A model generated the notes under the pieces. That model did no database searches and was not told the origin of the DNA. It was given only the letters and a program-made list of their open reading frames with translations. This document shows, piece after piece, positions 1,185-62,640 of a stretch of 64,000 nt of DNA (its first letter is position 1; every line of letters begins with the position of its first letter). The stretch is taken from NCBI GenBank assembly GCA_002269645.1, contig NIVC01000459.1:253760-317759 (forward strand). The letters run 5' to 3'. The DNA is from Macrostomum lignano. Its lineage: Eukaryota. The position numbers and the translations under genes are program-made.

Positions 1185-1236
1185 CTACAGAAATATGAAA
1201 AAGTAAGTTAAGCTTTTTCATGGATCAACAACTTGA

Positions 1237-1700: not shown

Positions 1701-2149
1701 CCTGGTGCGGGTTCCTTCTAGTCAAGGCCTTCTCAACGTCCCTGCACCTGTTTACACTGAATCTCTGTCTATTATTAAAAATCAAACCATTCTATTCCTA
1801 ACGGAAACTGCAAATAGTTCAATGCACCCCACCTGCCAGAAGAGCTCACCCACACAATCCAACTTTGTTGCAGCTGCAGAGACTGCACGAGTCTCTTTCA
1901 AAAACTCAGCTTCCTCTGAGTGTCCTCTTCATCTTTTTAGGGTTGCCTGTTCTCTCAGCAGCTTCATCAAACAGCTGTGATTTAAAATTCTGATATCGGA
2001 GGATATCAGATAGGCAACTTGATAGCATTTAAAGTGCTGTGGATTGGGATCACTTGCTCAGCCACTCTGTCTGCCTATCTGTCTCCTGTCCTCACCTATG
2101 ACTTCAATCATTCTCCGTAATCCTTCTGTCACTCTCCAATTGTCACTCT

Positions 2150-2545
2150 GCAATCTGTCACTCTGTATTTGCCGCCTTTCATCTGTCACTCTGTATCCGT
2201 CACTCTATATCTGTCACTCTGTATCTGTCACTCTGTATCCGTCACTCTGTACCCGTCACTCTGTATCCGTCACTCTATATCTGTCACTCTGTATCTATCA
2301 CTCCGTATCTGTCACTCTGTATCCGTCACTCTGTACCCGTCACTCTATATCCGTCACTCTGTATCTGTCACTCCGTATCTGCCACTCTGTATCCGTCACT
2401 CTGTATCTGTCACTCCGTATCTGGCACTCTGTATCTGACACTCTGTATCTGTCATTTCGTAACTGTCACTCTGTATCTGTCACTCTGCATCCATCACTTT
2501 GCATCTGCCGCTCGTCATTTGTCACTCTGCATCTGTCACTCTCCA
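2150..2545. repeat. ~14-bp minisatellite (CTGTATCTGTCACT / CTGTATCCGTCACT)n
   Basis: Direct tandem repetition. Confidence 0.9.
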
Positions 2546-2913
2546 TCTCTATACGAAAAATTTTAAAAATAACTGTAAGCAATGGATCAGCGGTTCTCCA
2601 AGTGGCTTTTCAACGCGTTTCTGTAAAGCATATAGCAACAGAATAACCTGAACACTCTACTTATAGTAGCGAATTTTAGAAGGAAATTTTTTTAAGGAAA
2701 ATTTACAATAAATAACGTTATATAAGAATATAGTGCCAAAGCTGGTTGCAAAAGTACACTTGTAGACTGCAAGCAACAACCGGATGTCTGTGGCCCAAGT
2801 TCCACCCTAAGCTACCTCACCTAGACCATAACGAAGCGACTTCAGAACCTCTGAGCGTCTGAGCGGTTTTTTGTTTCAAAGCGGTGCAACGTTTTGAAGA
2901 CTTGCCAAGCGAC

Positions 2914-5222
2914 ATGTACCGAGAGTACAGGTACAGAGAGGCCTACCTCGCTCCCATCAATGACAAGACCCTGCAGATGATTGGCGACTCCCGGGTTCGG
3001 GCCGCGTGCACCCAGACTGGCTGCCTGTTCTTCGTACAGAACCGAATGTGCTCAAGAAAGATCTGCGGCCGAGTTCTGCGCTGCTGCATCTTCGAGGTGC
3101 GCGGAGTCAGTCGGTCTGTGATCGGCAGCTTCAACAAAATCCTAGAGGGCTACTTTCCCGAGTACAAGCAGCGTAAAGTGCACGACGCCAAAGGTGTCAA
3201 GGCGAGGATTTCCTTTAACGAATGGACGCCCGACAACACGAAGCTGTTCTACATGTGCCAGCGCTTCGGACTGGGCCGCGGCGCCCTGGCCGATGTTGTC
3301 CTTGACGGTCCTTGCGGCGGCCTGCTGGAGGACTGGCAGACGTGTGAGTGAGACTGAGAGCACTTGACTCAATTGAGCAATGACTTGAGGTTCAGGGCAC
3401 GAATGAGTGTCCGAATATAGCTAGTGTTAGTGTTGCTAGTGAGAGCTGCCGACCCAAGGTACAGCGCGTCTGCATGCCTATACATGCATGTGCAAGCAAG
3501 CAAGCCAACAGACAAACAGACAAACAAACAAACAAACAACAAACCAGCAAACTAACTAACCAACTAACCACATAAACAACTGACTAACGAACCAACTAAT
3601 CAACAAATCAACAAACCAACAAACCAACAAACCAACAAACCAACAAACCAACAAACCAATAAACCAATAAACCAACAAATCAACAAACTAACAAACCAAC
3701 AAATCAACAAACCAACAAACCAACAAACCAACAAACCAACAAACCAACAAACCAACAAACCAACAAACCAACAAACCAACAAATCAACAAACCAACAAAC
3801 CAACAAACCAACAAACCAATAAACCAACAAATCAACAAACTAACAAACCAACAAATCAACAAACCAACAAACCAACAAACCAACAAACCAACAAACCAAC
3901 AAATCAACAAACCAACAAACCAACAAACCAACAAATCAACAAACTAACAAATCAACAAGCAAACAAACCAAAAAACCACCTAACCAACAAACCAACAAAC
4001 CAAGAAACCAACAAATCAACAAACCAACAAACCAACAAACCAACAAACCAACAAACCAAAAAACCACCTAACCAACAAACCAACAAACCAACAAACCAAC
4101 AAACCAACAAACCAACAAACCAACAAACCAACAAACCACCTAACCAACAAACCAACAAACCAACAAACCAACAAACCAACAAACCAACAAATCAACAAAC
4201 TAACAAATCAACAAGCTAACAAACCAAAAAACCACCTAACCAACAAACCAACAAACCAAGAAACCAACAAACCAACAAACCAACAAACCAACAAACCAAC
4301 AAACCAACAAACCAACAAACCAACAAACCAACAAACCAAAAAACCACCTAACCAACAAACCAACAAACCAAGAAACCAACAAACCAACAAACCAACAAAC
4401 CAACAAACCAACAAACCACCTAACCAACAAACCAACAAACCAACAAACCAACAAACCAACAAACCAACAAACCAACAAATCAACAAACTAACAAATCAAC
4501 AAGCTAACAAACCAAAAAACCACCTAACCAACAAACCAACAAACCAAGAAACCAACAAACCAACAAACCAACAAACCAACAAACCAACAAACCAACAAAC
4601 CAACAAACCAACAAACCACCTAACCAACAAAACAACAAACCACCTAACCAACAAACCAACAAACCACCTAACCAACAAACCAACAAACCACCTAACCAAC
4701 AAACCAACAAACCACCTAACCAACAAACCAACAAACCAACAAACCAACAAACCAACAAATCAAGAAACCAACAAAGAAACTAGCCAACGAATTAACTAAT
4801 CAACAACCCAACCAACCAACCCTACAGACCACACCGGCCTCATGGACATGATTGCGGACGTGCCAAGAAGCGCCTGGATGGCGGGCAAGCGAGAGAGCGA
4901 GGGTCTGTACACGTCATCCTTCGGCAACTGCATCAACTACCAGCCGACCCTGTTCCGCCGGGCCTGCAAGAACAAGACCTACAGAGGCCGCAAGGACTTT
5001 CAGCAGACTACGGAGCGCCTGCCGAACATGAACTACTTCAGCGATCCGGAGTACATGGACAGGCTGATCGACCCGCTGCGGGTGGAGACGCTCCGACAGA
5101 AGGAGGCGCTGCTGGAGGCGGAGCGCCACTCGCACAAGACCATGATGCCGGGCTACAGCACAGATGACAAGCCGGCAGCTGCCGACAAAAACAAGAGCGC
5201 AGAGACGGGAGGAACCAACTAA
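2914..5222 (+). CDS. Uncharacterised 2-exon protein, ~274 aa (exons 2914-3343, 4828-5222)
   Basis: ATG at 2914; donor T|GTGAGT at 3344; acceptor CTACAG|AC at 4827. The phase-1 join gives ...WQT-Y-HTGLMDM... and stays open to TAA at 5222, with GC-rich coding-like codon usage. An acceptor tttcaaag| at 2881 could link to a further upstream exon. Confidence 0.7.
3500..4820. repeat. Intronic 8-bp minisatellite (AACCAACA)n
   Basis: Fills most of the 3344-4827 intron and runs almost to the acceptor. Confidence 0.95.
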
Positions 5223-5619
5223 AAACTCTCTGGTTTAAGCAGAATTTTGTCCCAATCTGAAAAACGCTCTGTTTACCATTTTTATTAACACTCTTAAAGT
5301 CCAGTTGCTTTTCCTATTGAAGACAAAAATCTGAGCACAAGGCTTCAAATAGAGATGCCGACTTGAAAAAAAGAGAATATTTTTTTCAAAGATATGAAAA
5401 TTCTTTTTTTGTTAAAGGACTTGATTCTGTCATTCCTTATTTATCGGTCTCACAGGTGAATAGCGCGCTAATGAATGACATTTTGAAAAGTGGCTCAATT
5501 TATGAGGTTGCTAAAAGTTCATCATGTCCTTAATAAAGATCTGCTCCTTCCTTAGATTGCTCAGTCCTAAAACGCTATTCTAATCTAAGGCACTCCATAT
5601 AAGGTAGAGTGCTCAATCC

Positions 5620-6155
5620 TCTGAGTGCTCAATCCTCTGAGTACTCAATCCCTGGAGTGCTCAATCCTCTGAGTGGTCAATCCTCTGAGTGCTCAATCCT
5701 CTGAGTGCTCAATCCCAGGAGTGCTCAATCCTCTGAGTGGTCAATCCTCTGAGTGGTCAATCCTCTGAGTGCTCAATCCCAGGAGTGCTCAATCCTCTGA
5801 GTGGTCAATCCTCTGAGTGCTCAATCCTCTGAGTGCTCAATCCCAGGAGTGCTCAATCCCTGGAGTGCTCAATCCTCTGAGTGCTCAATCCTCTGAGTGC
5901 TTAATCCCTGGAGTGGTCAATCCTCTGAGTGCTCAATCCTCTGAGTGCTTAATCCCTGGAGTGCTCAATCCTTTAAGTGCTTAATCCTTTAAGTGCTTAA
6001 TCCTTAGAGTGCTCAATTCTTTGAGTGCCCAATCATCGGAGTGCCCAATCCTTGGAGTGCTCAATCCTCAATCCTTTAGAGTACTCAATCATTGGAGTGC
6101 TCAATCCTCAATTCTTTAGAGTGCTCAATCATTGGAGTGCTCAATCCTTGGGGTG
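5620..6155. repeat. 16-bp minisatellite (GAGTGCTCAATCCTCT)n
   Basis: Direct tandem repetition. Confidence 0.95.
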
Positions 6156-6544
6156 CTCAGCATCTTACATAAAATGATATACAGAAAAACATAAACTGAA
6201 ATCAACTGACCAGCAAAATAATGTTCAGACGATCAGTTTTGGTCATAAAAGTTAGCTACGAGTATAATAACAATCAAGCTTTTATTAAAAGAACTCCTGC
6301 TCATCTTCATGGAGTTGAGACAAAGAGTTAAAAATAGAATACTTGGCACGCGGGCAGGTGCTGATCTGTCTGAATTCATTAGCATATGGTGCAATGACTA
6401 CGTTATTCTTTGGCACGTATAAATTAGTCAACTTTATAGCATAATAGTTATTACGTTTCTAGATTCCAATTAAATGTGAAAAATGAAGTCACATCGTGTT
6501 CGAGAAGTTGCTGATATTCATGTACATGTACTAGTTAACCCAAG

Positions 6545-6730
6545 CTGAGAGTAGTACTACCCTCAGAGAGTAGTTCTACCCCAGAGAGTAATGCTACCCC
6601 AGAGAGTAATGCTACCCCAGAGAGTAATGCTACCCCAGAGAGTAATGCTACCCCAGAGAGTAGTTCTACCCCAGAGAGTAACGCTACCCCAGAGAGTAGT
6701 TCTACCCCAGAGAGTAATTCTACCCCACAC
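6545..6730. repeat. 18-bp minisatellite (ACCCCAGAGAGTAATGCT)n
   Basis: Direct tandem repetition, about 10 units. Confidence 0.9.
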
Positions 6731-7639
6731 AATTCCACTCCATGCTACCTCGAAAAGACGGGCAAACAAGCCAAGTTGCAATTCAGCTGCCTGTGTAGAG
6801 TTTACTTTTTCTAAAAGGAACTGTCTCAAACCAGACTGTCTATGGTAAAACTGATGGTGTTATGGTGTTATTAGTGCTAAAAAGGCAAACATAAGCTATT
6901 TCGCTAATGCATCTGTAGCGTCCTTCTCATGCAGCTGCTGTTCACGATTTTTCTCCACCCAGACGGCGACCCGAAAGTGCGCAGGTGGCGCGGTTTTCCG
7001 AGAGCAAGTCGGGGGTGGGCTGCCTTCGCATTCGCACTCTCTGTTCGGTCGATAACGCAGCAAACAAAGTGAAGAAGCCAGCACAATATGGCTTTGCCAA
7101 AAGCAACCAGCCCGAAGCAGGCAGGCTCAGGCAGCCGGGCTAAGCAAGAGCAGAGTTTGAGCTCGGGGCCCCAGCGATTTTTTAATTGCCGCGCTGCGCT
7201 TGCCGAGCTCTCCTTTCTTCTTCATCTCCTTTTTCTTTCATTTCTTTATTGATGTTGCTGCGTAGCGAGAGAGAAAAATTCTTTAATATTAGCTAGAAAT
7301 TTTTGGCCCATTGTGACCAGGGGGGTTTTGGGGTGCCGGGCCACAGAACCAGACGGACAGATAGACCGAGTGAAACAGACAGACGGTAGCTAAGAGAGGG
7401 GTGGATGTCGTGCTCAGAATCGGGCCGAGTTCGAGGCCGACTGAAGGCAAAAATAATTTTATAAAATTGCTGCCGATTTGGGCCTCACGGTAAGCAGAAA
7501 ATGTTGCAGAACTGATGGATTCTGGTGGGCTGTCTATCAGGGTTAGCGGGGTCTGACTGAATACCTTTGAAAAGGTAGTTGAGTATCTGACTGACGTGTT
7601 GTTAGGTTAAGCCCAGTTATTGATTTCTATAGATGGGTG

Positions 7640-8750
7640 ACTGCCTCTGTGTCTTAGGTGGGCGCCTCGTGTCTTAGTTGAGTGCCCCTGTGTCTTAGGT
7701 GGGCGCCCCCGTGTCTTAGGTGAGTGCCCCTGTCTCTCAGGTGAGTGCCCCTGTCTCTTAGGTGAGTGCCCCTGTGTCTTAGGTGAGTGCCCCTGTCTCT
7801 CAGGTGAGTGCCCCTGTCTCTTAGGTGAGTGCCCCTGTCTCTTAGGTGAGTTCCTCTGTGTCTTAGGTGGGCGCCTCGTGTCTTAGGTGAGTGCCCCTGT
7901 CTCTCAGGTGAGTGCCCCTGTCTCTTAGGTGAGTGCCCCTGTGTCTTAGGTGAGTGCCCCTGTGTCTCAGGTGAGTGCCCCTGTGTCTTAGGTGAGTGCC
8001 CCTGTCTCTTAGGTGAGTGCCCCTGTGTCTTAGGTGAGTGCCCCTGTGTCTTAGGTGGGCGCCCCCGTGTCTCAGGTGAGTGCCCCTGTCTCTCAGGTGA
8101 GTGCCCCTGTCTCTTAGGTGAGTGCCCCTGTGTCTTAAGTGAGTGCCCCTGTGTCTTAGGTGGGCGCCCCCGTGTCTTAGGTGAGTGCCTCTGTCTCTTA
8201 GGTGAGTGCCCCTGTGTCTTAAGTGAGTGCCCCTGTGTCTTAGGTGGGCGCCCCCGTGTCTCAGGTGAGTGCCCCTGTCTCTTAGGTGAGTGCCCCTGTG
8301 TCTCAGGTGAGTGCCCCTGTCTCTTAGGTGAGTGCCCCTGTGTCTTAGGTGAGTGCCCCTGTGTCTTAGGTGAGTGCCCCTGTCTCTTCAGGTGAGTGCC
8401 CCTGTCTCTTCAGGTGAGTGCCCCTGTGTCTTAGGTGAGTACCCCTGTGTCTCAGGTGAGTGCCCCTGTGTCTCAGGTGAGTGCCCCTGTGTCTTAGGTG
8501 AGTACCCCTGTGTCTCAGGTGAGTGCCCCTGTGTCTCAGGTGAGTGCCCCTGTGTCTTAGGTGAGTGCCCCTGTGTCTTAGGTGAGTGCCCCTGTGTCTT
8601 AGGTGAGTACCCCTGTGTCTCAGGTGAGTGCCCCTGTGTCTCAGGTGAGTGCCCCTGTGTACTAGGTGAGTGCCCCTGTGTCTTAGGTGAGTGCCCCTGT
8701 CTCCTAGGTGAGTGCCCCTGTGTACTAGGTGAGTGCCCCTGTGTCTTAGG
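7640..8750 (+). repeat. 21-bp minisatellite (GTGAGTGCCCCTGTGTCTTAG)n in a putative 5'-UTR intron (7490-8764) of the ZIP gene
   Basis: About 50 units, bracketed by donor CG|GTAAGC at 7490 and acceptor tattttgcag| at 8764. Confidence 0.9.
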
Positions 8751-8992
8751 TCTCTATTTTGCAGGCTAGATCGTAGTGAGGCAAAGAGAAAAAGTTACCT
8801 TTTGCTTTGTAGAGCCCCGACCAATAGCAGCTGCTGTTGACAGAAAAAGGAGAGAAAGAAGAGAGCTGCTCTGCGAGCCCTAGGGTTTCGCGAGTGAGTG
8901 GATAAATATGAGTGCCGAGTCCAAAAACAGTTAAATTTCTTGTCTGCAGGCTTAGCTTCTCTACAAATATTGAAAATATTTAAATATTAAAT

Positions 8993-12954
<3,962 letters not shown>

Positions 12955-14779: not shown

Positions 14780-17700
14780 TTAGAAGGGCTTGTATCCTTT
14801 GCGCTTTCCTCTGCTAGTTCGCAGGGCGATGCAGGCAAACAGAACCGCCAACGCTAGCAGCAGAACGAACAGCACAATCAGGCAGATGAACAGAGGCAGT
14901 GGCACCGCCCAGATCAGGCCTTCGGTGGGACTGCTGGCCGACTGCAGGATCATGTAGCCCAGCGGCCAGGCCAACTTGTTGTCAGTTCGGGTCTGCGGGG
15001 ATTTGAGAGACATATTGGGGATTCATAAGCCTTGCAAAAATCATAACATTATTTATCGTTCAGGTGATTACCACAGCTTTGCCTTCTGTTCGGTACGTTG
15101 GGATCTGAAAAAATTGAATGCGATGGCAATGGATTTTGAGAGAAATTAATGTTTAAGGGTCTTCCTGTCCTCAACTCTCACCTCCAGAATTTCCTCAACT
15201 CTCACCTCCACAATGTCCTCAACTCTCACCTCCACAATGTCCTCAACTCTCACCTCCACAATGTCCTCAACTCTCACCTCCACAATGTCCTCAACTCTCA
15301 CCTCCACAATGTCCTCAACTCTCACCTCCACAATGTCCTCAACTCTCACCTCCACAATGTCCTCAACTCTCACCTCCACAGTGTCCCTCAACTCTCACCT
15401 CCACAATGTCCTCAACTCTCACCTCCACAATGTCCTCAACTCTCACCTCCACAATGTCCTCAACTCTCACCTCCACAATGTCCCTCAACTCTCACCTCCA
15501 CAATGTCCTCAACTCTCACCTCCACAATGTCCTCAACTCTCACCTCCACAATGTCCTCAACTCTCACCTCCACAATGTCCTCAACTCTCACCTCCACAAT
15601 GTCCTCAACTCTCACCTCCACAATGTCCTCAACTCTCACCTCCACAATGTCCTCAACTCTCACCTCCACAATGTCCTCAACTCTCACCTCCACAATGTCC
15701 TCAACTCTCACCTCCACAATGTCCTCAACTCTCACCTCAACAATGTCATCAACTCTCACCTCCACAATGTCCTCAACTCTCACCTCCACAATGTCCTCAA
15801 CTCCCACCTCAACAATGTCATCAACTCTCACCTCCAGAATGTCCTCAACTCTCACCTCCACAATGTCCTCAACTCTCACCTCCACAATGTCCTCAACTCT
15901 CACCTCCACAATGTCCTCAACTCTCACCTCCACAATGTCCTCAACTCTCACCTCAACAATGTCATCAACTCTCACCTCCACAATGTCCTCAACTCTCACC
16001 TCCACAATGTCCTCAACTCCCACCTCAACAATGTCATCAACTCTCACCTCCAGAATGTCCTCTACTCTTTTCTTCTACGTCTTCTACGATTCCAATTTCA
16101 TCAACCCCAATGTCCTTAATCAGTCCTCACCTTATCAAGAAACTCAATATTGCTCCAGTTGGAGTCGTTGAATCCCAGTCCCCGCAGGAGGCTCTCCACG
16201 AAGATGCCATCAAAGCAGAGCCACCTCAGCCTGGCCTCGGACACGCTGCCCGATGGTCGATACGACCGGCTGCAGAAGCTGTCCACCAGGATGGACACCT
16301 CGGTGAGGTTGGCGCTGGGCCGGCTGGCCGCCCGACGGTTTGCCGTCAAATTGAAGAAATCGGCGACGTGATAGAAGCCGGAGAAGGCGACAAATTTACC
16401 GACTGGGTCGGGCTGGTAGACATTGTTGAAGGAGCAGCTGGTTTGGTTGCACAGCGAGTTGAAGAACCTGGCGGCCAGCAGGCGGCAGCGGGAGGCGTCG
16501 CCGCTGCCGGAGACGAGGAAGCGGGCATCCACCTTTGCGGCCGGCACGGTGAACAGGCCGTCCGAGCAGGGGGGGACGAACACCTCGCTGGCGCGTACCT
16601 GCGGTGTGGGTGTGTGGCATTGGTGTGGTATTGGTGTGGTATTGGGGTGGTATGGTGTGGCATTGGGGTAGTATGGTGTGGTATTGGTGTGGTATTGCTG
16701 TGGCATTGGGGTGGTATTGGTGTGGCATTGGGGTGGTATTGGTGTGGTATTGGTGTGGTATTGGTGTGGTATTGGTGTGGTATTGGTGTGGCATTGGGGT
16801 AGTATGGTGTGGTATTGATGTGGTATGGTGTGGCATTGGGGTGGTATGGTGTGGCATTGGGGTGGTATGGTGTGGTATTGGTGTGGCATTGGGGTGGTAT
16901 TGGTGTGGCATTTGGGTGGTATTGGCGTGGCATTGGAGTGGTATGGTGTGGTATTGGTGTGGTATGGTGTGGCATTGGGGTAGTATGGCGTGGTATTGGT
17001 GTGGCATTGGGGTGGTATTGGTGTGGTATGGTGTAGCATGGTGTGGTATTGGTGTGGTATTGATGTGGTATTGGTGCGGCATTGTGTGGTATTGGTGTGG
17101 TATTGGTGTGGCATGGTGTGGTATTGGTGTGGTATTGGTGTGGTATTGGTGTGGTATTGGTGTGGTATTGATGTGGTATGGTGTGGTATGGTGTGGTATT
17201 GGTGTGGCATTGTGTGGTATTGGTGTGGTATTGGTGTGGTATGGTGTGGTATTGGTGTGGTATTGGTGTGGTATTGGTGTGGTATTGATGTGGTATTGAT
17301 GTGGCATGGTGTGGCATGGTGTGGTATTGGTGTGGTATTGATGTGGCATGGTGTGGTATTGGTGTGGCATGGTGTGGTATTAGTGTGGTATTGGTATTGC
17401 ATGGTGTGGTATTGGTGAGGCATAGGTATAGGGATGGGTTATGAGAATACCCTGGGGACCAGGGATGGCACGGGATACCGGAGCTCCTGTCGCACCTTGT
17501 CCGAGTAACCCAGCTGCCAGCAGGGAAAATCCACAGGTTTGCCATCGTCATATCCTGCGTCGGCGATGGCCCGGCCGATGGCTCGCCGCTGGGCCGCGCC
17601 GAGTCCGTAGCAGCCGAAGCTGTGCGCGTAGACCCGCCTGGTGCGGCCATAGACAGTCAGCGGTCGCGTGTCCGGCGAGTCGGGCGGCGAGTCCGGCGGC

Positions 17701-19258
17701 GATTCGAAGGCGACCTGGACGCTGCCGTCGCCAAGGTCGAGGCTCCCGAAGGTTGCTGGCAGATCCGGCGGCGGATTGGCGGTCGAACCGGCGTTCTGCG
17801 CCGCCTCCCGCGCAGGCAGGTCGCCGAATCCGCCTTTAAGGAAGTTGACGGCCAGCCAGCCGGCGCGCGCCTCCTCGTCACCTTCAAGGATGCGCACGCC
17901 GCCGACTTCAAAGTGGAAGCCGCCGCTGCCGCCCGGCCGCAGAATTTTTCGAGCATCCGAGAGAACGGCTTCAGCTTTAGAGGCGTTCACGGATCTGAGA
18001 GCAGGGGGGGGGGGCGTTTGGGTGGCGGTGGGTGGAACTGCTGAGAACTGAGATCGATTCGGTCACACAGTTGGCAGTCGGTCACACAGCTCAGCAATCG
18101 GTCACACAGCCCAGTAATCGGTCACACAGCTCAGCAATGGGTCACAAAGCCCAGAAATCAGTCACACAACTCAGCAGTCAGACACAGCTCAGCCATCGGT
18201 CAAACAGCTCATCAGCCTCACCTGTACATCCTCATCCCGGCAGTGGCGCCCAGATACAGTTTGGTTTGCTTCTCAAGTTTCTCTGGCACCGCCGGTCTCA
18301 CGGCGCTGACGGCCTCTCGCATTTGACTCAGGCCTCCGGCCACTTGTATAGGGAGCGCTGAAAGTAAGAAAATGAATATGATAAATCAAAATGATGATGA
18401 ACAAGGCAAAGTCACTTCGGCTTGAGATCAAACACTTAAGGCTCGAGATCTCTTACAAGTGTGGGCGGTGGCCTTCTGGAGCACCACTCCGTTGCCGCGG
18501 TACTTGCTTGAGCGCCAAGCGTAGATGTAGGCCTTCGTGGAGTGCGCGCCCGCGTCCACGATGACCCCGAACTGTGGGAAGACAGCGCAAGAGTCAGATA
18601 CGTTTATCGCTGGCATGCCCTGCCCCAAGATGACCCTCCCAAACAGACAGATAAATCCAGAGAGTCTTACAGTCACAGCCGGCCGACTCAAGGTGAGGTG
18701 CACAACAACCAGGACGATGAGTCCAATAGCTCCGATGGCGAGCGCCAGAGCTGCCAGAATCCACCAGGTGGACAGGGCCGGCGGCGGCACCTTCGGCAGG
18801 TCCGGTGGAGGTGGCGGTGGATCTGCGAGGTGGGGATAATGGGATTTGGGAAGTCACGGTAACAGTCTGGATGTCCAGTACAGCATGTCTGCAAGCTGGG
18901 GGACTGCATGGGATCTGCACCAACTGCAGCATGTCTGCAAGCTGAGGGACTGCATCTGATCAGCACCCGACATCGCCCCAAGCAAGTCACATGGACAGCG
19001 CGACTCACTCTTATTATAGGCAAAGATGGTCTCGCCATCAGTCAAGCCGGATTCGGCGATGGTCTTCGCCAAGTCCAGCTCAGGATTAGCGGCGTTCCTG
19101 CGCAATGCAAACGTTTCCTTGCGTTTAACCCGCTTCTCAGTGCAAAACTCGTCCAACAACCAGTCCAGTGTCCGGTCCGCCGTGGTCTGCACGTGCACCC
19201 GACCGAATATCTCGTCATTGTCGAGGTCGCACTTCACCGTGATGGTTATAATACTCAT
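14780..19258 (-). CDS. CD39/GDA1-family ecto-NTPDase with N-terminal ubiquitin-like domain, 610 aa (exons 19258-19009, 18822-18671, 18571-18457, 18357-18222, 17994-17496, 16598-16131, 14992-14780)
   Basis: ACR1 VIVDAGAHST, ACR2 LYLGATAGMR, ACR3 GDEEARAGWLAVNFL, ACR4 LDLGDGSVQ, ACR5 AWPLGYM; N- and C-terminal TM helices. Six GT-AG introns with consistent phases; 1833 nt. NTPDase identity is high confidence; the Ubl exon link is moderate. Confidence 0.85.
15165..16060. repeat. 24-bp minisatellite (CTCAACTCTCACCTCCACAATGTC)n in NTPDase intron 6
   Basis: Direct tandem repetition; explains the long ORFs at 15149-16171. Confidence 0.95.
16605..17420. repeat. ~11-bp degenerate minisatellite (TGGTGTGGTAT/TGGTGTGGCAT)n in NTPDase intron 5
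   Basis: Direct tandem repetition abutting the acceptor at 16599. Confidence 0.93.
18055..18205. repeat. 20-bp degenerate minisatellite (GGTCACACAGCTCAGCAATC)n in NTPDase intron 4
   Basis: About 7 units. Confidence 0.8.
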
Positions 19259-20319
19259 GATTGCCGAGCGATCTCAACTTTAACGATAGCGGGTTTCAAT
19301 CCAAGCCAGACGGGGGGCCATGGATCGCACTCGGACAGGAGCAGCTACGAAACAAGTGCACGCTTCGTGGATCCACCCAAGCTGTAGGGCGACTGCAGTT
19401 AAAGGCTCAGAACGAGAGCAATATTCTTTCTCGCTGCAAACTATGCCAGATGTTTCAAACCGAAGCTCTCGACTGGGCCCACCGCATGGCTGAGGCCTTG
19501 CTGCGCCGATATCTGGCAAAAATCCACACGATTCAGAGAGGAAAAAACGATTTTTGTATGATAGCCAGGCTCGCTTTGCACAGATAACAGCGCGCTCCGA
19601 GTTAGCGCAAAAGCAGTCAAGTTATATTAATCTACACTTGACTTCCGTCTCTCTCTCTCTTCAGCCCTCCAGGCCACTGCAGTCAGGCAGGCAGTATTTT
19701 TCAATCGATAACATTGATTGATTTCTGCGCCAAAGCGAGAGAGAGAGAGAGAGAGAAGAGGAGAGCACCACAGAGCAGCCCGCGTCATTGTCTCTCTCTC
19801 CCCTAGCAATGCCGCCCACAAAATCCACTCTCTCATGTCCGTTCACGGTGGTTCGGTCTCGGGCAAAACTGCATGGCATAGTCAATAGCTCCGTAGCAAT
19901 TATTAGTAATAATTGTCCATATGGAGCAATAGAAGGCCGCACCCAAGAGATACGCTCTGCTGCTGCTTGTAGTTAATTAAAAAATTATTTAAGTCGCCGC
20001 TGAACTGCGAGCAGTGCATGGTTACAACTTACTAATGCAAGTAGTATAGTCCAAAACTGGAATTGTAAAAAACTCTTAAGTGTATATTTTCCTTAATTTG
20101 GATAAACAACAGTTGAGACTGTAGATTCATTTTAATATCGAGTTCGCACGTTTTAGTATTCAGAAGGCATGAATTCACCAATTGAAACAAAGACATTCAG
20201 TCTGGAGCCGCATATATTTGATTCAGCAGATGTGCCAGCACTAGAGGCAAATAAAATGCAAAACAGTTCGCGTCTCTTGAGACTAAGCAGCTGATGTAAC
20301 CGCAACCTCCAGCTGAATC

Positions 20320-21000
20320 TGCCTCAGCATCCTTCATCTGAGTCTGCATTCGCATCAGCATCCTTCATCTGAGTCTGCATTCTCATCAGCATCCTTCATC
20401 TGAGTCTGCCTCATCAGCATCCTTCATCTGAATCTGCATTCTCATCAGCATCCTTCATCTGAGTCTGCATTCTCATCAGCATCCTTCATCTGATTCTGCA
20501 TTCTCATCAGCATCCTTCATCTGAGTCTGCATTCTCATCAGCATCCTTCATCTGAGTCTGCATTCTCATCAGCATCCTTCATCTGAGTCTGCATTCTCAT
20601 CAGCATCCTTCATCTGAATCTATATCCTCATCAGTATCCTTAATCTGCATCAGCATCCTTCATCTAAATCCGCATCAGCATCCTTCATCTAAATCTTCAT
20701 CCGCATCAGCATCCTTCATCTGAATCTACATTCCCTTCAACATCCTTGATCTAAATCTACATTCCCTTCAACATCCTTCATCTGAATCTACATCCGCATC
20801 AACATCCTTTATCTGAATCTACATCCTCATCAGCATCCTTTATCTGAATCTACATACTCATCACTATCCTTCATCCGCATCAGCATCCTTTATCTAAATC
20901 TACGTCCACATCAACATCCTTCATATGAATCTACATCCGCATCAACATCCTTCATCTGAATCTACATCCGCATCATCATTCTTCATCTGGATCGTCTTCA
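20320..21000. repeat. 31-bp minisatellite (GCATCCTTCATCTGAGTCTGCATTCTCATCA)n overlapping the LicD stop region
   Basis: Direct tandem repetition that becomes more degenerate towards the CDS. Confidence 0.9.
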
Positions 21001-21964
21001 TCAGCATCAGCGCTCCCATTAACATCCGCAGACTCCGCATCGGCCCCAGCAGAGTCGGCCCAGCGGGCAGCCGCGCCAGGAATCTGAGTTCTCAGCTCAG
21101 GCGGAATTTTAACGTACAGTCCAGTAGACGAGTCGTACATGGCGTCGCGCCCCAGGTAGCCGTACTCGACAGTCAGGTAGGCCAGCAGGTCCCTAGGCGC
21201 AAAAGTTGGTACAGACTCAAAGGTGCAGGGCACAGCTGGGAAGAGACAGTCCGCAGGGAATCGCTTGTCCATGCAGTCGTAGATGCCAGGTACGGACCAG
21301 TTGACGCGCAACGAGCCGTTTGGATCCAGCGGATGCGGCGACACGGTGAACACGTCCAGGTGCACCAGGCAGGGATCGAAGGGAAACCGCTTAGGCCCGC
21401 AGTTGAGACCAACGGCTGCCCAACCGGCCTCGGTGAGGCTGAACTTCACCCGCTTGCATCCCCGACCAGCGTAGGGGATCTCAACAGTCGAACCGGACTC
21501 GAACCACGGCTTACCGCTCAGACTGCAGCTGGCATCGAATGCGATATGAGCAGCGCCCGGCTCGGCCGCCGTCAACCGGTTGCCAATAGCAACCAGACGG
21601 GCAAAGTCGACCTCGCGGACAACCAGATCGATATCGGAGTCGTGCGGAATCATCCGGCCGGACTCGCGTGCACAGCCAGGGCGCTGCCGCCGTACAGGGC
21701 GTACTCAACCCCGGCCGACTCTAGCTCGGACTTGACCCTGGCGAACAGCGCCAGACGAGCCGGCCGGAACAGGCGGGCTCGCCGGACAGACTTGGCATAG
21801 TTGGCCGGCCGACAGTCGCCCCACATGTTAAGGCTGATCGAGCTGGCGGTTCGGTGCTTCCGCTGCCCGCCGCTGGCGTCGTCATCGTCGAACCACAGCG
21901 GCAGCAGCTGGCACAGACTCGCTGTTGGTGACTCGCTCTGGAGCTCCTCCTCGCCTGCGCTCAT
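20976..21964 (-). CDS. LicD/fukutin-like nucleotidyltransferase-fold protein, single exon, with an apparent 1-nt frameshift near 21665
   Basis: YALYGGSALAV in one frame and MIPHDSDIDL in the next match the LicD G-T/S-L-L-G...IPWDxDxD motif. Restoring one base (cac[c]gcgag) gives ...LAVHRESGRMIPHDSDIDL. C-terminal YLTVEYG motif. Confidence 0.75.
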
Positions 21965-22157: not shown

Positions 22158-24850
22158 GGAGTGTTAATAACACAGAAACCCCATCCCTCAGAGTGTTAAT
22201 AACACAGAAACCCCATCCCTCAGTGTTAATAACACAGAAACCCCATCCCTCAGAGTGTTAATAACACAGAAACCCCATCCCTCAGAGTGTTAATAACACA
22301 GAAACCCCATCCCTCAGAGTGTTAATAACACAGAAACCCCATCCCTCAGAGTGTTAATAACACAGAAACCCCATCCCTCAGTGTTAATAACACAGAAACC
22401 CCATCCCTCAGAGTGTTAATAACACAGAAACCCCATCCCTTAGAGTGTTAATAACACAGAAACCCCATCCCTCAGAGTGTTAATAACACAGAAACCCCAT
22501 CCCTTAGAGTGTTAATAACACAGAAACCCCATCCCTCAGAGTGTTAATAACACAGAAACACCATCCCTTAGAGTGTTAATAACACAGAAACCCCATCCCT
22601 TAGAGTGTTAATAACACAGAAACCCCATCCCTCAGAGTGTTAATAACACAGAAACCCCATCCCTCAGAGTGTTAATAACACAGAAACCCCATCCCTCAGT
22701 GTTAATAACACAGAAACCCCATCCCTCAGAGTGTTAATAACACAGAAACCCCATCCCTCAGTGTTAATAACACAGAAACCCCATCCCTCAGTGTTAATAA
22801 CACAGAAACCCCATCCCTCAGAGTGTTAATAACACAGAAACCCCATCCCTCAGAGTGTTAATAACACAGAAACCCCATCCCTTAGAGTGTTAATAACACA
22901 GAAACCCCATCCCTCAGAGTGTTAATAACACAGAAACCCCATCCCTTAGAGTGTTAATAACACAGAAACCCCATCCCTCAGAGTGTTAATAACACAGAAA
23001 CACCATCCCTTAGAGTGTTAATAACACAGAAACCCCATCCCTTAGAGTGTTAATAACACAGAAACCCCATCCCTCAGAGTGTTAATAACACAGAAACCCC
23101 ATCCCTCAGAGTGTTAATAACACAGAAACCCCATCCCTCAGTGTTAATAACACAGAAACCCCATCCCTCAGAGTGTTAATAACACAGAAACCCCATCCCT
23201 TAGAGTGTTAATAACACAGAAACCCCATCCCTCAGAGTGTTAATAACACAGAAACCCCATCCCTCAGTGTTAATAACACAGAAACCCCATCCCTCAGTGT
23301 TAATAACACAGAAACCCCATCCCTCAGAGTGTTAATAACACAGAAACCCCATCCCTCAGAGTGTTAATAACACAGAAACCCCATCCCTTAGAGTGTTAAT
23401 AACACAGAAACCCCATCCCTCAGAGTGTTAATAACACAGAAACCCCATCCCTTAGAGTGTTAATAACACAGAAACCCCATCCCTTAGAGTGTTAATAACA
23501 CAGAAACCCCATCCCTCAGAGTGTTAATAACACAGAAACCCCACCCCTCAGTGTTAATACACAGAAACCCCATCCCTCAGAGTGTTAATAACACAGAAAC
23601 CCCATCCCTCAGAGTGTTAATAACACAGAAACCCCATCCCTTAGAGTGTTAATAACACAGAAACCCCATCCCTCAGAGTGTTAATAACACAGAAACCCCA
23701 TCCCTCAGTGTTAATAACACAGAAACCCCATCCCTCAGAGTGTTAATAACACAGAAACCCCATCCCTCAGAGTGTTAATAACACAGAAACCCCATCCCTC
23801 AGAGTGTTAATAACACAGAAACCCCATCCCTCAGTGTTAATAACACAGAAACCCCATCCCTCAGTGTTAATAACACAGAAACCCCATCCCTCAGTGTTAA
23901 TAACACAGAAACCCCATCCCTCAGAGTGTTAATAACACAGAAACCCCATCCCTTAGAGTGTTAATAACACAGAAACCCCATCCCTCAGAGTGTTAATAAC
24001 ACAGAAACCCCATCCCTCAGAGTGTTAATAACACAGAAACCCCATCCCTTAGAGTGTTAATAACACAGAAACCCCATCCCTTAGAGTGTTAATAACACAG
24101 AAACCCCATCCCTTAGAGTGTTAATAACACAGAAACCCCATCCCTCAGTGTTAATAACACAGAAACCCCATCCCTTAGAGTGTTAATAACACAGAAACCC
24201 CATCCCTTAGAGTGTTAATAACACAGAAACCCCATCCCTTAGAGTGTTAATAACACAGAAACCCCATCCCTCAGAGTGTTAATAACACAGAAACCCCATC
24301 CCTCAGAGTGTTAATAACACAGAAACCCCATCCCTCAGTGTTAATAACACAGAAACCCCATCCCTCAGAGTGTTAATAACACAGAAACCCCACCCCTCAG
24401 TGTTAATACACAGAAACCCCATCCCTCAGAGTGTTAATAACACAGAAACCCCATCCCTCAGAGTGTTAATAACACAGAAACCCCATCCCTTAGAGTGTTA
24501 ATAACACAGAAACCCCATCCCTCAGAGTGTTAATAACACAGAAACCCCATCCCTTAGAGTGTTAATAACACAGAAACCCCATCCCTTAGAGTGTTAATAA
24601 CACAGAAACCCCATCCCTTAGAGTGTTAATAACACAGAAACCCCATCCCTTAGAGTGTTAATAACACAGAAACCCCATCCTCTAGAATGCTAATAACACA
24701 GAAATGCCATCCTCTAGAATGCTAATAACACAGAAATGCCATCCTCTAGAATGCTAATAACACAGAAATGCCATCCTCTAGAATGCTAATAACACAGAAA
24801 TCCCATCCTCTAGAATGCTAATAACACAGAAATCCAATCGCTTAGAATGT
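22158..24850. repeat. 32/30-bp satellite (GAGTGTTAATAACACAGAAACCCCATCCCTCA)n, ~2.7 kb
   Basis: Head-to-tail units without spacers; a diverged variant (TCTAGAATGCTAATAACAC...) occupies the right edge. Confidence 0.97.
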
Positions 24851-25430
24851 TATTAAAAATTCTAAAAAAGACCTAATCTGCATAACAAAATAAAACAAAG
24901 AATACAAGACAATCAATTCATTGATCACTGCATCCCATCGTGGGATGGCAGACCAGCAATTTAATTACAACAAGCCTATTATTATTATCTTATTATAATT
25001 AGATAACACATACAGATAGACAAATATTGTCGATTGAAGCAGATGACTTCATTGAAAACAGCGACAAGAAATGAAATTAAAATGACACAACAAAGGGGTT
25101 AAGCAAAACCAGAGTGGGTATAGAGATGAGTTTCTCGACCCCTGTTATAGGCGGATGCACATTATAATTGAACATTGGTTATTAAATATTATTTATACTT
25201 GAAGAAAAGCACAACGCGCCAAATTTGCTCAGCAATTCTCAGTCAACAAACGCCTGCGCAGTGAATTAATGGTATTTTTTCTGCGCAAAATATTCATTCT
25301 CTTTTTTATTGTTTCATTTTTTCAGTTGCTGTTGCTGCTTTGATTCTTCTTTTCTTGCACAATAATATTTTATTGTTTTTAACTCTTTTGTATCATTTTT
25401 TCGTTATTTTTTTTCAAGCTGAGCGACGAA

Positions 25431-28400
25431 TCAGTAGGGCGCGTACCAGTAAGGTGGTGGGCGGCGTCTGCAAGTGGTGATGAGCGTTGCAGCATACTCT
25501 AGAAATAATCAATACCTAATTGAATCTAATAAGCCAAATGCGACAAAAATGTAATAAAAAGATTCACAGCACCTGGGTAATTAAATGCAACTATTGTATA
25601 ACTACTAACGTTGTAAATAAATACCGTATTGAAAATAAAAATATGAAAGCACAATTTGGGATTGAAATCCATAATCTGATCACTGAGATCCCCAATCTGA
25701 TCACTGAGATCCCCAATCTGATCACAGAGATACCCAATCTGAGCACTGAGATCCCCAATATGATCACCGAGATCGCCAATCTGATCACCTGAGATCGCCA
25801 ATCTGATCACCTGGGATCCCCGATCTGATCACCGAGATCGCCAATCTGATCACCTGAGATCCCCAATCTGATCACCTGAGATTCCCAATCTGATCACCTG
25901 AGATCCCCAATCTGATCACCTGAGATCCCCAGTCAGATCACCTGAGATCCCCAATATGATCACCGAGATCGCCAATCTGATCACCTGAGATTCCCAATCT
26001 GATCACCTGGGATCCCCAATCTGATCACCGAGATCGCCAATCTGATCACCTGAGATCGCCAATCTGATCACCTGGGATCCCCGATCTGATCACCGAGATC
26101 GCCAATCTGATCACTGAGATCCCCAATCTGATCACCTGAGGTACCCAATCTGATCACTGAGATCCCCAATCTGATCACCTGAGATCCCCAGTCAGATCAC
26201 CTGAGATCCCCAATCTGATCACTGAGATCCCCAATCTGATCACCTGAGATCCCCAATCTGATCACCTGAGATCCCCAATCTGATCACAGAGATCCCCAAT
26301 CTGATCACAGAGATACCCAATCTGATCACCTGAGATTCCCAATCTGATCACCTGAGATTCCCAATCTGATCACCTGAGATCCCCAATCTGATCACTGAGA
26401 TCCCCAATCTGATCACAGAGATACCCAATCTGATCACCTGAAATCCCCAATCTGATCACCGAGATCGCCAATCTGATCACCTGAGATTCCCAATCTGATC
26501 ACCGAGATTGCCAATCTGATCACCTGAGATCCCCAATCTGATCACCTGAGATCCCCAATCTGATCACCTGAGATCCCCAATCTGATCACCTGAGATCCCC
26601 AATCTGATCACCTGAGATCCCCAATCTGATCACCTGAGATCCCCAATCTGATCACCTGAGATCCCCAATCTGATCACTGAGATCCCAAATCTGATCACCT
26701 GAGATTCCCAATCTGATCACTGATCCCCAATCTGATCACCTGAGATCCCCAATCTGATCACCTGAGATCCCCAATCTGAGCACTGAGATCCCCAATCTGA
26801 TCACCTGAGATCCCCAATCTGATCACCTGAGATCCCCAATCTGAGCACTGAGATCCCCAATCTGATCACCTGAGATCCCCAATCTGATCACCTGAGATCC
26901 CCAATCTGAGCACTGAGATCCCCAATCTGATCACCTGAGATCCCCAATCTGAGCACTGAGATCCCCAATCTGATCACCTGAGATCCCCAATCTGAGCACT
27001 GAGATCCCTAATCTCATACCGCAATAGAGAATCGGATAGACCCTATGATCACAATAATGGTGCACACTAATAGTACTCACTGTACTTTAGTCACAAACAG
27101 GTAATGCAAAGAATCGCAAACAAAGCCGAAGCCATCAACATAACCGCAGAGCTCTCAGCATATTTATATACCTGAATCCGCGACCTCCCCGGGGCGCCAT
27201 ACCGGACCCGCCGTACATTCGGGCCATGCGACCGCGGAATCGGCCCCTCGGCGGCCGGTTAGTAACAGACATGCCGGGCGTGTTGGTTCGCTTAGCCATC
27301 ACTTTGAGGGAACGATTGCGGAACAGGCTCTCGTCTAGGGCGAGGGCCGCCTCTACAGAGTCTTTCTCGGCGAATTCCACGTAGGCGAAACCTTTGGGCT
27401 GGCCTGCGACAATTGGGATTATAGTCATTTGGTGCTACTGGTTAGTAGTGTAATATTTGCAGCAGAAAATCGTCTCACAACAAGAGCTGACAGCAATTCC
27501 ACCCTCAGTACGCAGGCACGCATTCATGCACACGCTCACACAGGGTGTACACCGGCCCTGACTGTCTAATCGTCAGGCATGTACACTATGTGCCTTGGGG
27601 GCTGCATAATGTGCCACAACGATGATGTACACAATGATGATGTACACACGTGCTTAATGTGCCACACTGATAATGTACACACGTGCTTAATGTGCCACAC
27701 TGATAATGTACACACGTGCTCGATGTGCCAAACTGATGATGTACACACGTGCTTAATGTGCCAAACTGATGATGTACACACGTGCTTAATGTGCCACACT
27801 GATGATGTACACACGTGCTTAATGTGCCAAACTGATGATGTACACACGTGCTTAATGTGCCACACTGATGATGTACACACGTGCTTAATGTGCCACACTG
27901 ATAATGTACACACGTGCTTAATGTGCCACACTGATGATGTACACGCATGCTCAATGTGCCACACTGATAAATGTACACACATGCTCAATGTGCCACACTG
28001 ATAAATGTACACACATGCTCAATGTGCCACACTGATGATGTACACACATGCTCAATGTGCCACACTGATAAATGTACACACATGCTCAATGTGCCACACT
28101 GATAATGTACACACATGCTCAATGTGCCACACTGATAATGTACACACATGCTCAATGTGCCACACTGATACGAGCTAAATGTACACACATGCTCAATGTG
28201 CCACACTGATAATGTACACACATGCTCAATGTGCCACACTGATAAATGTACACACATGCTCAATGTGCCACACTGATGATGTACACACATGCTCAATGTA
28301 CATACGTGCTCGATTTATCAGACAATGTTCCCACACCAGAGGGACTCGAACCCCATGCCGCACCTGTATACTTATTGCACAGGATAGTAATCCTGTTAAT

Positions 28401-28775
28401 AGCGCCGCAGGAATGAAAATGCGTCTCCAACTCCTCAGCCGTGGCTCCGTAATCGACGTTGCCAACGTAAACTGAGCGCGAGTCCGTATCTAAGCGCTCC
28501 TCGTCTGTTAACACGGCGGTTGGCATAGCAACAGACGAGCCGGCCATGGGCTTCTCCATGTCTGACTGCATCATGCGCAGCCGCTCCGCCTCGGCTTCCA
28601 TCTCGCGCACCTTCTGCCTGATGCTCTCCAGCTCGGGGTCGTCCCGCAGCTCGGTGTCTTCATCACCGGCCGCCGCTCGTCCACCGCCGCCGCCGCTAGC
28701 TTCGTTCGAAGTCTTCTGTTGCTGCTGCTCGTCATCGAATTCGCTGGAGTTCTCCTCAAACAGGAGGTCGGCCAT
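25431..28775 (-). CDS. PABPN1: Nuclear poly(A)-binding protein, 226 aa (exons 28775-28364, 27403-27172, 25467-25431)
   Basis: Coiled coil [37 protein letters not shown]...[10 protein letters not shown]-rich tail, C-terminal YWYAPY*. GT-AG introns with phases 1 and 2; 681 nt. Confidence 0.93.
25670..27010. repeat. 22/21-bp minisatellite (GAGATCCCCAATCTGATCACCT)n in PABPN1 intron 2
   Basis: Direct tandem repetition. Confidence 0.95.
27610..28300. repeat. 33-bp minisatellite (ATGTGCCACACTGATGATGTACACACGTGCTTA)n in PABPN1 intron 1
   Basis: Direct tandem repetition. Confidence 0.95.
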
Positions 28776-28854
28776 GGCATGAATGGTCGGGTTTGGGTAT
28801 CGCTTCGTTGTTTTATACTACACTAAAGATAGTCCTCCGATTAAACTAGCTTGA

Positions 28855-29565
28855 AGCTGTAACTCCCCCTGACACTGCTGGAACTCCCATCTGACACTGC
28901 TGGAACTCCCATCTGACACAGCTGGAACTCCCATCTGACACAGCTGGAACTCCCATCTGACACAGCTGGAACTCCCATCTGACACTGCTGGAACTCCCAT
29001 CTGACACAGCTGGAACTCCCATCTGACACAGCTGGAACTCCCATCTGACACAGCTGGAACTCCCATCTGACACAGCTGGAACTCCCATCTGACACAGCTG
29101 GAACTCCCATCTGACACAGCTGGAACTCCCATCTGACACTGCTGGAACTCCCATCCATCTGACACTGCTGGAACTCCCATCTGACACTGCTGGAACTCCC
29201 ATCTGACACAGCTGGAACTCCCATCTGACACTGCTGGAACTCCCATCTGACACAGCTGGAACTCCCATCTGACACTGCTGGAACTCACATCTGACACTGC
29301 TGGAACTCCCATCTGACACAGCTGGAACTCCCATCTGACACTGCTGGAACTCCCATCTGACACAGCTGGAACTCTCATCTGACACTGCTGGAACTCCCAT
29401 GTGACACTGCTGGAACTCCCATCTGACACTGCTGGAACTCCCATCTGACACTGCTGGAACTCCCATCTGACACTGCTGGAACTCCCATCTGACACTGCTG
29501 GAACTCCCATCTGACACTGCTCGAACTCCCATCTGACACAGCTGGAACTCCCATCTGACAGCTAC
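28855..29565. repeat. 22-bp minisatellite (CTGGAACTCCCATCTGACACAG)n just upstream of PABPN1
   Basis: Direct tandem repetition. Confidence 0.95.
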
Positions 29566-30164
29566 AAATCTGGCCATTTACAGGAATGTCTAGAATGGAT
29601 TCTTGGAACTTGGAACCCCACAAGACAAAAAACAGCAAAAAAATTGCAGCCCACCATACGAGAAAAAATTTATTAATAATCGACGTATGAATGTTTATTA
29701 TGTTATTAATATGTAATATTTTGCTGATGTCCAGTTATTGGCATATTTTATGAAACAAATAATAGACAAAAAATAAAGTGCGATTTATGATATGGGGTAG
29801 CAAAGTGAATAATAAATAATAGCAAATAATAGTTGTAGCGTAAAGTACAAATGCTTTTGAATAATTTTGTTGCACATATTTCTTCACTGCAGATATATAC
29901 GCGAAGAGGAGTATATATGAAAAAAGCTGATAGAATGAGCGAAAGCAAAAAAAGTCAATTAGAAATGATGAAGACGGAAACTAGCAATTGATCAATGGAT
30001 AGACAGAATATGAGCTATATAAAATGCAACAGAAAATTGTATAATAAAGAGGGGTTTCTAATTACATAATTGAGCTAAATTAATTGAGCAGGGTGATTAA
30101 AATATAAATAAACGCACTTGTTATACTGGTCATAAATCAAGTTGCACAGTGCCGCAACCAACTG

Positions 30165-32022: not shown

Positions 32023-32134
32023 CTGAGCTAATTAAGCAATTATTGACTATTGTAGCCTTTGATGGGCGCACTAAAATCAGGGGGGGGGTTCATATCTCCG
32101 ACAAATCAGTTTAGCTAGATGTTTCGACAAGCTT

Positions 32135-62561: not shown

Positions 62562-62640
<79 letters not shown>

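Follow-up and report, generated by a model that had tools for sequence, protein, structure and literature searches.

An eight-exon gene encoding a CD39-type NTPDase with an additional N-terminal domain

The 64,000-nucleotide stretch of contig NIVC01000459.1 analysed here (hereafter the window, whose coordinates are used throughout) contains on its minus strand, from 19258 to 14780, an eight-exon locus that is very probably one real gene of the free-living flatworm Macrostomum lignano. When read, assembled and translated, its exons, which are bounded by GT/AG at all splice sites and have compatible phases (Table 1), encode a protein of 621 amino acids ending at a TAA stop codon (14782-14780). 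From N- to C-terminus, this protein comprises a domain of 83 amino acids, predicted to be ubiquitin-like (Ubl), the linker NPPPPPPDLPKVPPP, a first transmembrane helix (TM1), the ectodomain of an ecto-nucleoside triphosphate diphosphohydrolase (NTPDase) of the GDA1_CD39 family, a second transmembrane helix (TM2) and a basic tail. The original prediction, made from the DNA sequence alone, had proposed the order Ubl, poly-proline, transmembrane segment, NTPDase ectodomain, transmembrane segment, and this order was recovered by Pfam, by hydropathy and in the layout of a paralogue described below; all that the prediction had stated as fact agreed with the sequence.

The Pfam profile GDA1_CD39 (PF01150) matches residues 133-573 with 172.6 bits (cutoff 24.9; E = 1.5e-50) over profile positions 8-415 of 423, and the five apyrase conserved regions (ACRs) occur in order and in alignment with those of relatives, as VDAGAHST, LGATAGMR, GDEEARAGW, DLGDGSVQ and WPLGY, which places the protein in this family. 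Hydropathy analysis detected two hydrophobic segments only, TM1 and TM2; six N-x-S/T sequons and eight cysteines are all located between them and the C-terminal tail is basic, as in the NTPDase1/2/3/8-type subgroup with its two transmembrane helices and its glycosylatable, cysteine-rich ectodomain. The best relatives are of the ENTPD2/3 type. Judged from its sequence, the protein belongs to the NTPDase2/3-like branch of the GDA1_CD39 family and is of the two-pass, cell-surface type. By analogy with the topology of surface NTPDases, both tails, and hence the Ubl domain, would be cytosolic.

The original prediction overlooked two substitutions in the phosphate-binding loops of the window copy. 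ACR1 reads DAGA (Ser to Ala) and ACR4 reads DLGDGS (Gly to Asp), so that neither loop is canonical, whereas DAGS is present in 123/124 and D-x-GGAS likewise in 123/124 of the non-Macrostomum relatives and both loops are canonical in the Macrostomum paralogue P0003. The window copy retains the DxG core of each of these two loops, the Glu-Glu of ACR3, the Ser and Gln of ACR4, the Trp of ACR5 and all eight ectodomain cysteines, and the UniProt model P0020 carries the same two substitutions with few other changes. Because near-invariant residues of two phosphate-binding loops are replaced, hydrolysis of extracellular nucleotides by the window copy is not assured; its activity may be altered or reduced compared with that of the canonical paralogue, and it may be a pseudoenzyme or an enzyme with altered specificity.

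Table 1. Exons and first intron of the Ubl-NTPDase gene (window coordinates; aa, amino acids)
Feature	Position	Strand	Content
exon 1	19009..19258	-	start codon and 83-aa predicted ubiquitin-like (beta-grasp) domain; phase-1 GTGAGT donor
intron 1	18823..19008	-	186 nt, GT..AG; position and phase common to paralogue locus L001
exon 2	18671..18822	-	NPPPPPPDLPKVPPP linker and TM1 (~aa 103-128); hydropathy maximum 3.04
exon 3	18457..18571	-	ACR1 (FGVIVDAGAHSTKAYIY); Ser to Ala at the near-invariant DAGS position
exon 4	18222..18357	-	ACR2 (LYLGATAGMR)
exon 5	17496..17994	-	ACR3 (ILEGDEEARAGW) and ACR4 (SLDLGDGSVQ; Gly to Asp at the DxGGAS position)
exon 6	16131..16598	-	C-terminal lobe of the ectodomain; conserved cysteines, N-glycosylation sequons
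exon 7	15072..15104	-	33-nt mini-exon (IPTYRTEGKAV)
exon 8	14780..14992	-	ACR5 (LAWPLGY), TM2 (~aa 579-606), basic tail RTSRGKRKGYKPF, stop codon

The junction between the Ubl exon and the NTPDase exons

Six codons ahead of the start codon of the gene (ATG, 19258-19256) lies a TGA in the same frame. Exon 1 comprises 250 nt (83 codons plus one nucleotide) and ends as AAT AAG A/GTGAGT; the acceptor AG of intron 1 is located at 18824-18823 and exon 2 begins at 18822, so that the junction codon (A+AT) encodes Asn and is followed by PPPPPPDLPKVPPP and then by the hydrophobic helix. The two proposals that exon 19258-19009 encodes an 83-aa peptide without di-glycine and that its phase-1 GTGAGT donor joins the 18823 acceptor in frame were thus both borne out by the sequence and the phase check, the paralogue intron having the same position and phase. 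Read through the donor, the open reading frame (ORF) of exon 1 reaches 134 aa, with its stop within intron 1. This intron contains one in-frame stop and no ATG from that stop to exon 2.

The closest homologues of the window protein are all from Macrostomum lignano. Two UniProt entries correspond to the same gene and include the Ubl exon, A0A1I8HB62 (P0001; automatic name 'Ubiquitin-like domain-containing protein') and A0A1I8G7Q2 (P0020; 'ENTPD1', 605 aa); they are ~95-99% identical to the window gene, from which they deviate at the intron-5 junction and by the omission of the 33-nt mini-exon. A paralogue, PAA81568.1/PAA48824.1 (P0003/P0022; Mlig026231g1 and BOX15_Mlig010970g1, respectively), is 43-44% identical overall and presents the same layout, Ubl, hexaproline, transmembrane helix, NTPDase, transmembrane helix; the order of its parts is Ubl, DPPPPPP, WWILAA helix, NTPDase and TM2, and both the hexaproline run and the WWILAA..LAIG helix of exon 2 are kept in P0003. 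The exon-1 peptide is 50% identical to the N-terminus of the paralogue (82 aligned codons). At the paralogue locus L001, the Ubl exon ends in phase 1 as TCT G/GTGAGG and the next exon begins as CTGCAG/AT CCG CCG, and the similarity between the two loci breaks off exactly at the donor of the Ubl exon. Comparison of the loci by tblastx detected homology internal to the gene and shared minisatellites only, without broader synteny. The NCBI models of the paralogue stem from a genome-guided RNA-seq assembly, with gene boundaries cut at spliced leader and poly(A) signals (PMC5730564), and the Ubl-NTPDase join of the paralogue is therefore transcript-derived. We consider it highly probable that the fused architecture is real.

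About 30% of M. lignano genes are trans-spliced, and the spliced leader (SL), CGGTCTCTTACTGCGAAGACTCAATTTATTGCATG, has a terminal ATG (PMC8629364). Joined to 18822, this ATG opens a frame that reads IHRHLH...TSP, out of frame with the NTPDase and stopped after 44 codons. On these grounds, an SL spliced to exon 2 was rejected as the source of the start codon. Exons 2 and 3 encode no Met, the first Met beyond exon 1 being located C-terminal of ACR1; as originally proposed, the start codon has to come from an exon further upstream. Exon 3 (acceptor 18571) begins in phase 0, where the terminal ATG of the SL would be in frame; trans-splicing there would yield an NTPDase without Ubl, poly-proline and TM1, a form that is hypothetical only, and no sign of an SL joined to exon 3 was found.

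In the downstream part of the gene, the exon 5/6 junction YSDK/VRASEVF aligns with YTAT VRATDVF of the paralogue, and the mini-exon peptide IPTYRTEGKAV resembles a 12-aa insert, ITVNHSTSAGEQ, in the RNA-seq-based paralogue model P0022. Since homology with the paralogue agrees at both places, we prefer the present model to the UniProt models at the intron-5 junction and at the mini-exon. The mini-exon is missing from the UniProt models P0020 and P0025 and, for this reason, may be alternatively spliced. Three introns are nearly filled with minisatellites (15166-16068, 24 bp x 37.5; 16612-17417, 11 bp x 75; 18059-18211, 20 bp x 7.8), and these intronic arrays yield long spurious ORFs on both strands.

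Predicted fold of the N-terminal domain

The N-terminal peptide of the window protein and that of the paralogue match no Ubl profile at its curated threshold, and all their sub-threshold Pfam matches are to beta-grasp families. For the paralogue, these are YukD (19.8 bits) and Rad60-SLD (14.5 bits); for the window peptide, DUF2604, RBD_SIN1 and TUG-UBL1 follow as weaker matches behind Rad60-SLD and YukD. The AlphaFold2 model, computed from a two-sequence alignment, presents strands at residues 3-12 and 15-24, a helix at 31-42, a strand at 50-54, a helix at 63-70 and a strand at 76-82, corresponding to the topology b-b-a-b-a-b. When this model was compared with the PDB using Foldseek, the best 50 matches listed were nearly all to SUMO, ubiquitin, Rad60-SLD2, ISG15 and Hub1, and the remainder to other beta-grasp proteins (probability 1.00, E-values down to 6e-5, TM-scores of 0.5-0.70). 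The predicted model therefore combines, with moderate confidence, a beta-grasp topology and a structural likeness to known Ubl proteins. In a model of full-length P0003, most of the same elements were obtained with lower confidence (predicted local distance difference test (pLDDT) of 41-65 in the domain), the short third strand being missing; beyond the domain, this model shows a disordered poly-proline linker and a transmembrane helix at residues 102-129. The original prediction of a beta-grasp fold is thus backed more by the modelled topology and the Foldseek matches than by the sequence profiles, which are consistent with it but stay under threshold, or by profile-profile alignment, which was weak. 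Taken together, the models make it probable that the 83 N-terminal amino acids adopt a beta-grasp fold.

No Gly-Gly is present at the end of the domain, either in the window protein (...ETIFAYNK-N-PPPPPP) or in the paralogue (...IYAFDS-DPPPPPP), and neither shows the exposed or processable C-terminal Gly-Gly of type 1 modifiers. So far as sequence allows us to predict, the domain fits an integral UBL and cannot be a conjugatable modifier, because it is without Gly-Gly and is directly followed by six prolines and a transmembrane helix.

Selection on the Ubl exon and its distribution

The Ubl exon is under purifying selection. Between the window copy and the paralogue, the Nei-Gojobori method (NG86) gave dN = 0.46 and dS = 1.63 (dN/dS ~0.28), and the Ubl domain is 50% identical in amino acids between them, compared with 43-44% for the whole protein. 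Two near-identical copies of the paralogue (L001 and L003) differ at four positions of the Ubl exon, all of them third-position and synonymous, with no non-synonymous difference.

When 1.84 billion representatives were searched exhaustively with HMMER, a Ubl profile made of the window and paralogue sequences retrieved only Macrostomum NTPDases (E ~1e-44) and a metagenome fragment, L002. As P0001 and P0002 carry the window exon-1 peptide and P0003 is part of the profile, this E-value shows only that the domain is present. Four other proteins (P0015, P0016, P0018 and P0019) were rejected as Ubl carriers, being long, internally repetitive proteins matched in 2-12 partial stretches. Fragment L002 (positions 826-1090 of ENA metagenome contig ERZ27264081 k141_1422588, from an environmental assembly) corresponds to a diverged copy of the Ubl exon, with 75% nucleotide identity to the window over 56 nt and the same phase-1 donor (AAT AAA A/GTGAGT). 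A 1-nt break in its frame after RVHLY might stem from the assembly or might mark a pseudogene, and no beta-grasp Pfam family matches it; it backs only the conservation of the Ubl exon and its donor. A likeness of the end of this contig to RecJ was dropped, as no Pfam match was obtained.

A profile search for relatives of the NTPDase gave 592 matches, and domain content was read on the 120 listed. None of these best 120 carries a second Pfam domain beside PF01150 or covers the N-terminal domain of the query, and the single long match among them is a tandem NTPDase of Adineta. It therefore holds, in these relatives, that such a domain is normally lacking from CD39-type NTPDases. The architecture is unusual by the same measure, although less novel than first proposed, since it appears restricted to Macrostomum, as a lineage-specific layout, and the fused protein is already present in UniProt and NCBI, where it stands unstudied under automatic names. 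Literature searches on Ubl-NTPDase fusions, on the Mlig gene identifiers and on Macrostomum NTPDases retrieved nothing relevant.

Comparison with known proteins

The window protein shares with vertebrate ENTPD2/ENTPD3, CD39/ENTPD1 and ENTPD8 (28-35% identity) the GDA1_CD39 domain with its five ACRs, two transmembrane helices near the termini, an ectodomain that is glycosylated in the vertebrate proteins and carries sequons here, and conserved cysteines. Unlike these proteins, which have short cytosolic tails only, it adds the 83-aa Ubl and the poly-proline run; it also has no counterpart of the first disulfide pair, between ACR1 and ACR2, and it has DAGA/DLGDGS instead of DAGS/DLGGAS. The M. 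lignano paralogue has the full layout and the intron-1 position and phase in common with it, but is only 43% identical, with canonical ACR1 and ACR4. The closest relatives outside Macrostomum (29-32% identity) are SprV_0100357200 of Sparganum proliferum and a homologue from Trichobilharzia szidati, both of the SmATPDase1 type. These NTPDases of parasitic flatworms have the same two-TM surface-type layout and likewise no cysteine pair between ACR1 and ACR2, but in their N-terminal tails (~55-125 aa), that of Sparganum being the longer, neither a resemblance to the Ubl nor a Pfam match was detected.

HERP/HERPUD1 and TMUB1/2 carry a non-conjugatable cytosolic UBL beside a transmembrane segment, which serves as a docking site for partners of the ubiquitin system; they are adaptors of endoplasmic reticulum quality control without an enzymatic ectodomain. 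Their likeness to the window protein is an analogy of layout, and no sequence relationship was detected.

A putative docking or regulatory module

The explanation that we prefer as a whole, with a rough probability of 0.55, is that the gene encodes a Macrostomum surface-type NTPDase with a lineage-specific cytosolic Ubl that acts as a docking or regulatory module. A ubiquitin-like domain of ~83 aa would have been gained in this lineage on the cytosolic N-terminus of an NTPDase, with a hexaproline linker between it and TM1, ~19 residues ahead of TM1. Facing the cytosol, the Ubl would be neither cleaved nor conjugated, as an integral UBL such as those of HERP and of TMUB1-type membrane proteins. 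With the poly-proline run, it could form a docking or regulatory module for cytosolic partners, either ubiquitin/SUMO-receptor-like or of the SH3/WW/profilin type, and the recruited partners would set the trafficking, surface residence or turnover of the NTPDase. A coupling of this kind, to trafficking or signalling, had been suggested in the original prediction. The dynamics of the transmembrane helices control the activity of surface NTPDases (PMC7954995), and the Ubl, being so near TM1, may also tune catalysis via motions of this helix. We give the docking or regulatory role of the Ubl and poly-proline run, considered by itself, about an even chance.

A bolder and unlikely version of this proposal would see in the Ubl a hard-wired, non-removable ubiquitin- or SUMO-like tag on the tail of an ecto-nucleotidase, serving in Macrostomum as a constitutive sorting or regulatory signal. 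Such a tag might route the protein to endosomal, multivesicular or secretory-vesicle paths, or the poly-proline run might link it to cytoskeletal or SH3/WW adaptors; it might also gate catalysis allosterically via TM1. The window copy, its phosphate loops being altered, might in that case be a pseudoenzyme that senses nucleotides and signals inward by way of the Ubl.

Several observations weigh against the preferred explanation of a surface-type NTPDase with a docking Ubl. At the level of sequence, the best Pfam matches of the window peptide are sub-threshold (Rad60-SLD, E = 3e-4, 20.9 bits with a cutoff of 23.8; YukD, E = 6e-4, 21.0 bits with a cutoff of 27). Alignment by hhalign with a small ubiquitin/NEDD8/SUMO alignment is correct in register and weak (P = 0.0067, probability 5.7%), and sequence searches of the PDB, whether by the domain itself or by a profile of it, retrieved no Ubl. 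The confidence of the AlphaFold2 model is modest (pLDDT 65), for an input alignment of two sequences. With ACR1 and ACR4 substituted, the enzyme part of the window copy may not function in the way assumed. None of the matches of the homologue search was an RNA-seq-based NCBI protein of the window copy, so that its 19009/18822 junction is a predicted one and its expression putative; partners, localisation and activity are likewise putative.

Alternative explanations

That the junction is an artefact of the gene model, the Ubl exon being a small gene by itself, an exon that is not translated or part of another transcript and exon 2 being joined elsewhere or to an SL, we regard as very unlikely. 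The missing transcript support at the window copy, the frequency with which M. lignano genes are trans-spliced and the run of the exon-1 ORF to the intron-1 stop are all compatible with it, as is UniProt model P0004, in which the poly-proline exon is joined to other upstream sequence and the Ubl is not included. The same join with the same phase-1 intron nevertheless occurs in the paralogue, which is 43% identical and was modelled from RNA-seq, conservation ends precisely at the donor, which is retained in fragment L002, and the SL offers no usable start at exon 2, exons 2 and 3 being without ATG. Model P0004 is a frameshift-ridden prediction from an older assembly, and we set it aside as evidence for a Ubl-less form. 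A more serious alternative, which we hold possible rather than probable and which is compatible with the preferred explanation, accepts the architecture but sees the window copy as a catalytically impaired or decaying duplicate, either a pseudoenzyme or a young pseudogene. The canonical paralogue would then be the working Ubl-NTPDase, and any function of the window copy would lie outside catalysis, such as the binding of nucleotides or scaffolding by the Ubl and poly-proline run. The two loop substitutions, set against near-invariant relatives and a canonical paralogue, and the missing RNA-seq-based protein speak for such a copy, and the genome of M. lignano is recently polyploid and rich in redundant copies (PMC5730564). 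Random decay is harder to reconcile with eight intact exons, canonical splice sites and the retained ACR residues and ectodomain cysteines; moreover, near-identical P0020 shares the substitutions with few other changes, which points to a stable state.

The remaining alternatives concern the N-terminal domain itself. It is doubtful, although conceivable, that the 83 amino acids form a lineage-specific fold that is not a functional Ubl, either another alpha/beta fold or a beta-grasp piece serving only as spacer or in oligomerisation, unconnected to ubiquitin/SUMO readers. All sequence matches being sub-threshold, the pLDDT values (65 isolated, 41-65 in full-length context) and the lack of a beta-grasp Pfam match for the L002 homologue would fit this alternative, and surface NTPDases need oligomerisation for full activity (PMC7954995). 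Against it, the sub-threshold matches of two sequences with 50% identity point to beta-grasp families alone, the topology of the model is uniform, the best 50 Foldseek matches listed are nearly all ubiquitin-like and the automatic UniProt name is an independent pointer. Ubiquitin-fusion precursors exist, such as the fusions of ubiquitin with ribosomal proteins, and the predicted fold resembles SUMO and ubiquitin, so that one might also think of a conjugatable modifier freed from the NTPDase by a protease. We consider this extremely improbable: neither paralogue has a Gly-Gly or a conserved cleavage motif (AYNK-NPPPPPP, AFDS-DPPPPPP), and the domain sequence is confined to these membrane proteins.

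Genomic surroundings

Upstream of the Ubl-NTPDase gene and on the same strand, a LicD-family (fukutin/FKRP-like) gene has its last exon (20976-21653, minus strand), which ends ~1.7 kb before the Ubl exon, and a 31-bp tandem array (20313-20993) extends over its 3' end. In a trans-splicing organism, it is conceivable that the LicD-family and NTPDase genes form an operon. The window also contains, on the plus strand, coding exons of a ZIP zinc transporter (11294-12421; Pfam Zip, E = 2.6e-38) and of an amiloride-sensitive sodium channel (50517-51578; ASC/ENaC/DEG family, E = 2.7e-9). No tRNA, Rfam family or SL-RNA gene was detected in the 64-kb window.

Many minisatellite arrays are present in 1-10400, 22159-35893 and 56686-62844, for example 8 bp x 165 (3501-4820), 32 bp x 85 (22159-24856), 22 bp x 62 (25673-27014) and 39 bp x 48 (32166-34079). 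Two arrays of 178 bp x 6.6 copies (43460-44623 and 45727-46892), located ~1.1 kb apart, are reverse complements of each other and could mark the two ends of a transposable element or else a large palindrome. The first 2 kb of the window have a GC skew of -0.62.

Significance

Surface NTPDases terminate extracellular ATP/ADP signalling, and their short tails and transmembrane helices are regulatory. A folded Ubl and a poly-proline run directly ahead of TM1 are features for which we found no description in the literature on this family. The layout is lineage-specific and already present, unremarked, in UniProt and NCBI, and domain accretion is common in a recently polyploid genome; overall, we regard it as helpful for annotation and as a modest curiosity, but not as a major surprise. 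If the hard-wired tag discussed above were true, it would be a new link of the termination of purinergic signals to the ubiquitin-reading machinery. If functional, the Ubl-NTPDase would represent a natural experiment on the control of the trafficking or activity of an ecto-enzyme by a cytosolic module, a question that is testable in Macrostomum lignano, where transgenesis and RNA interference are established.

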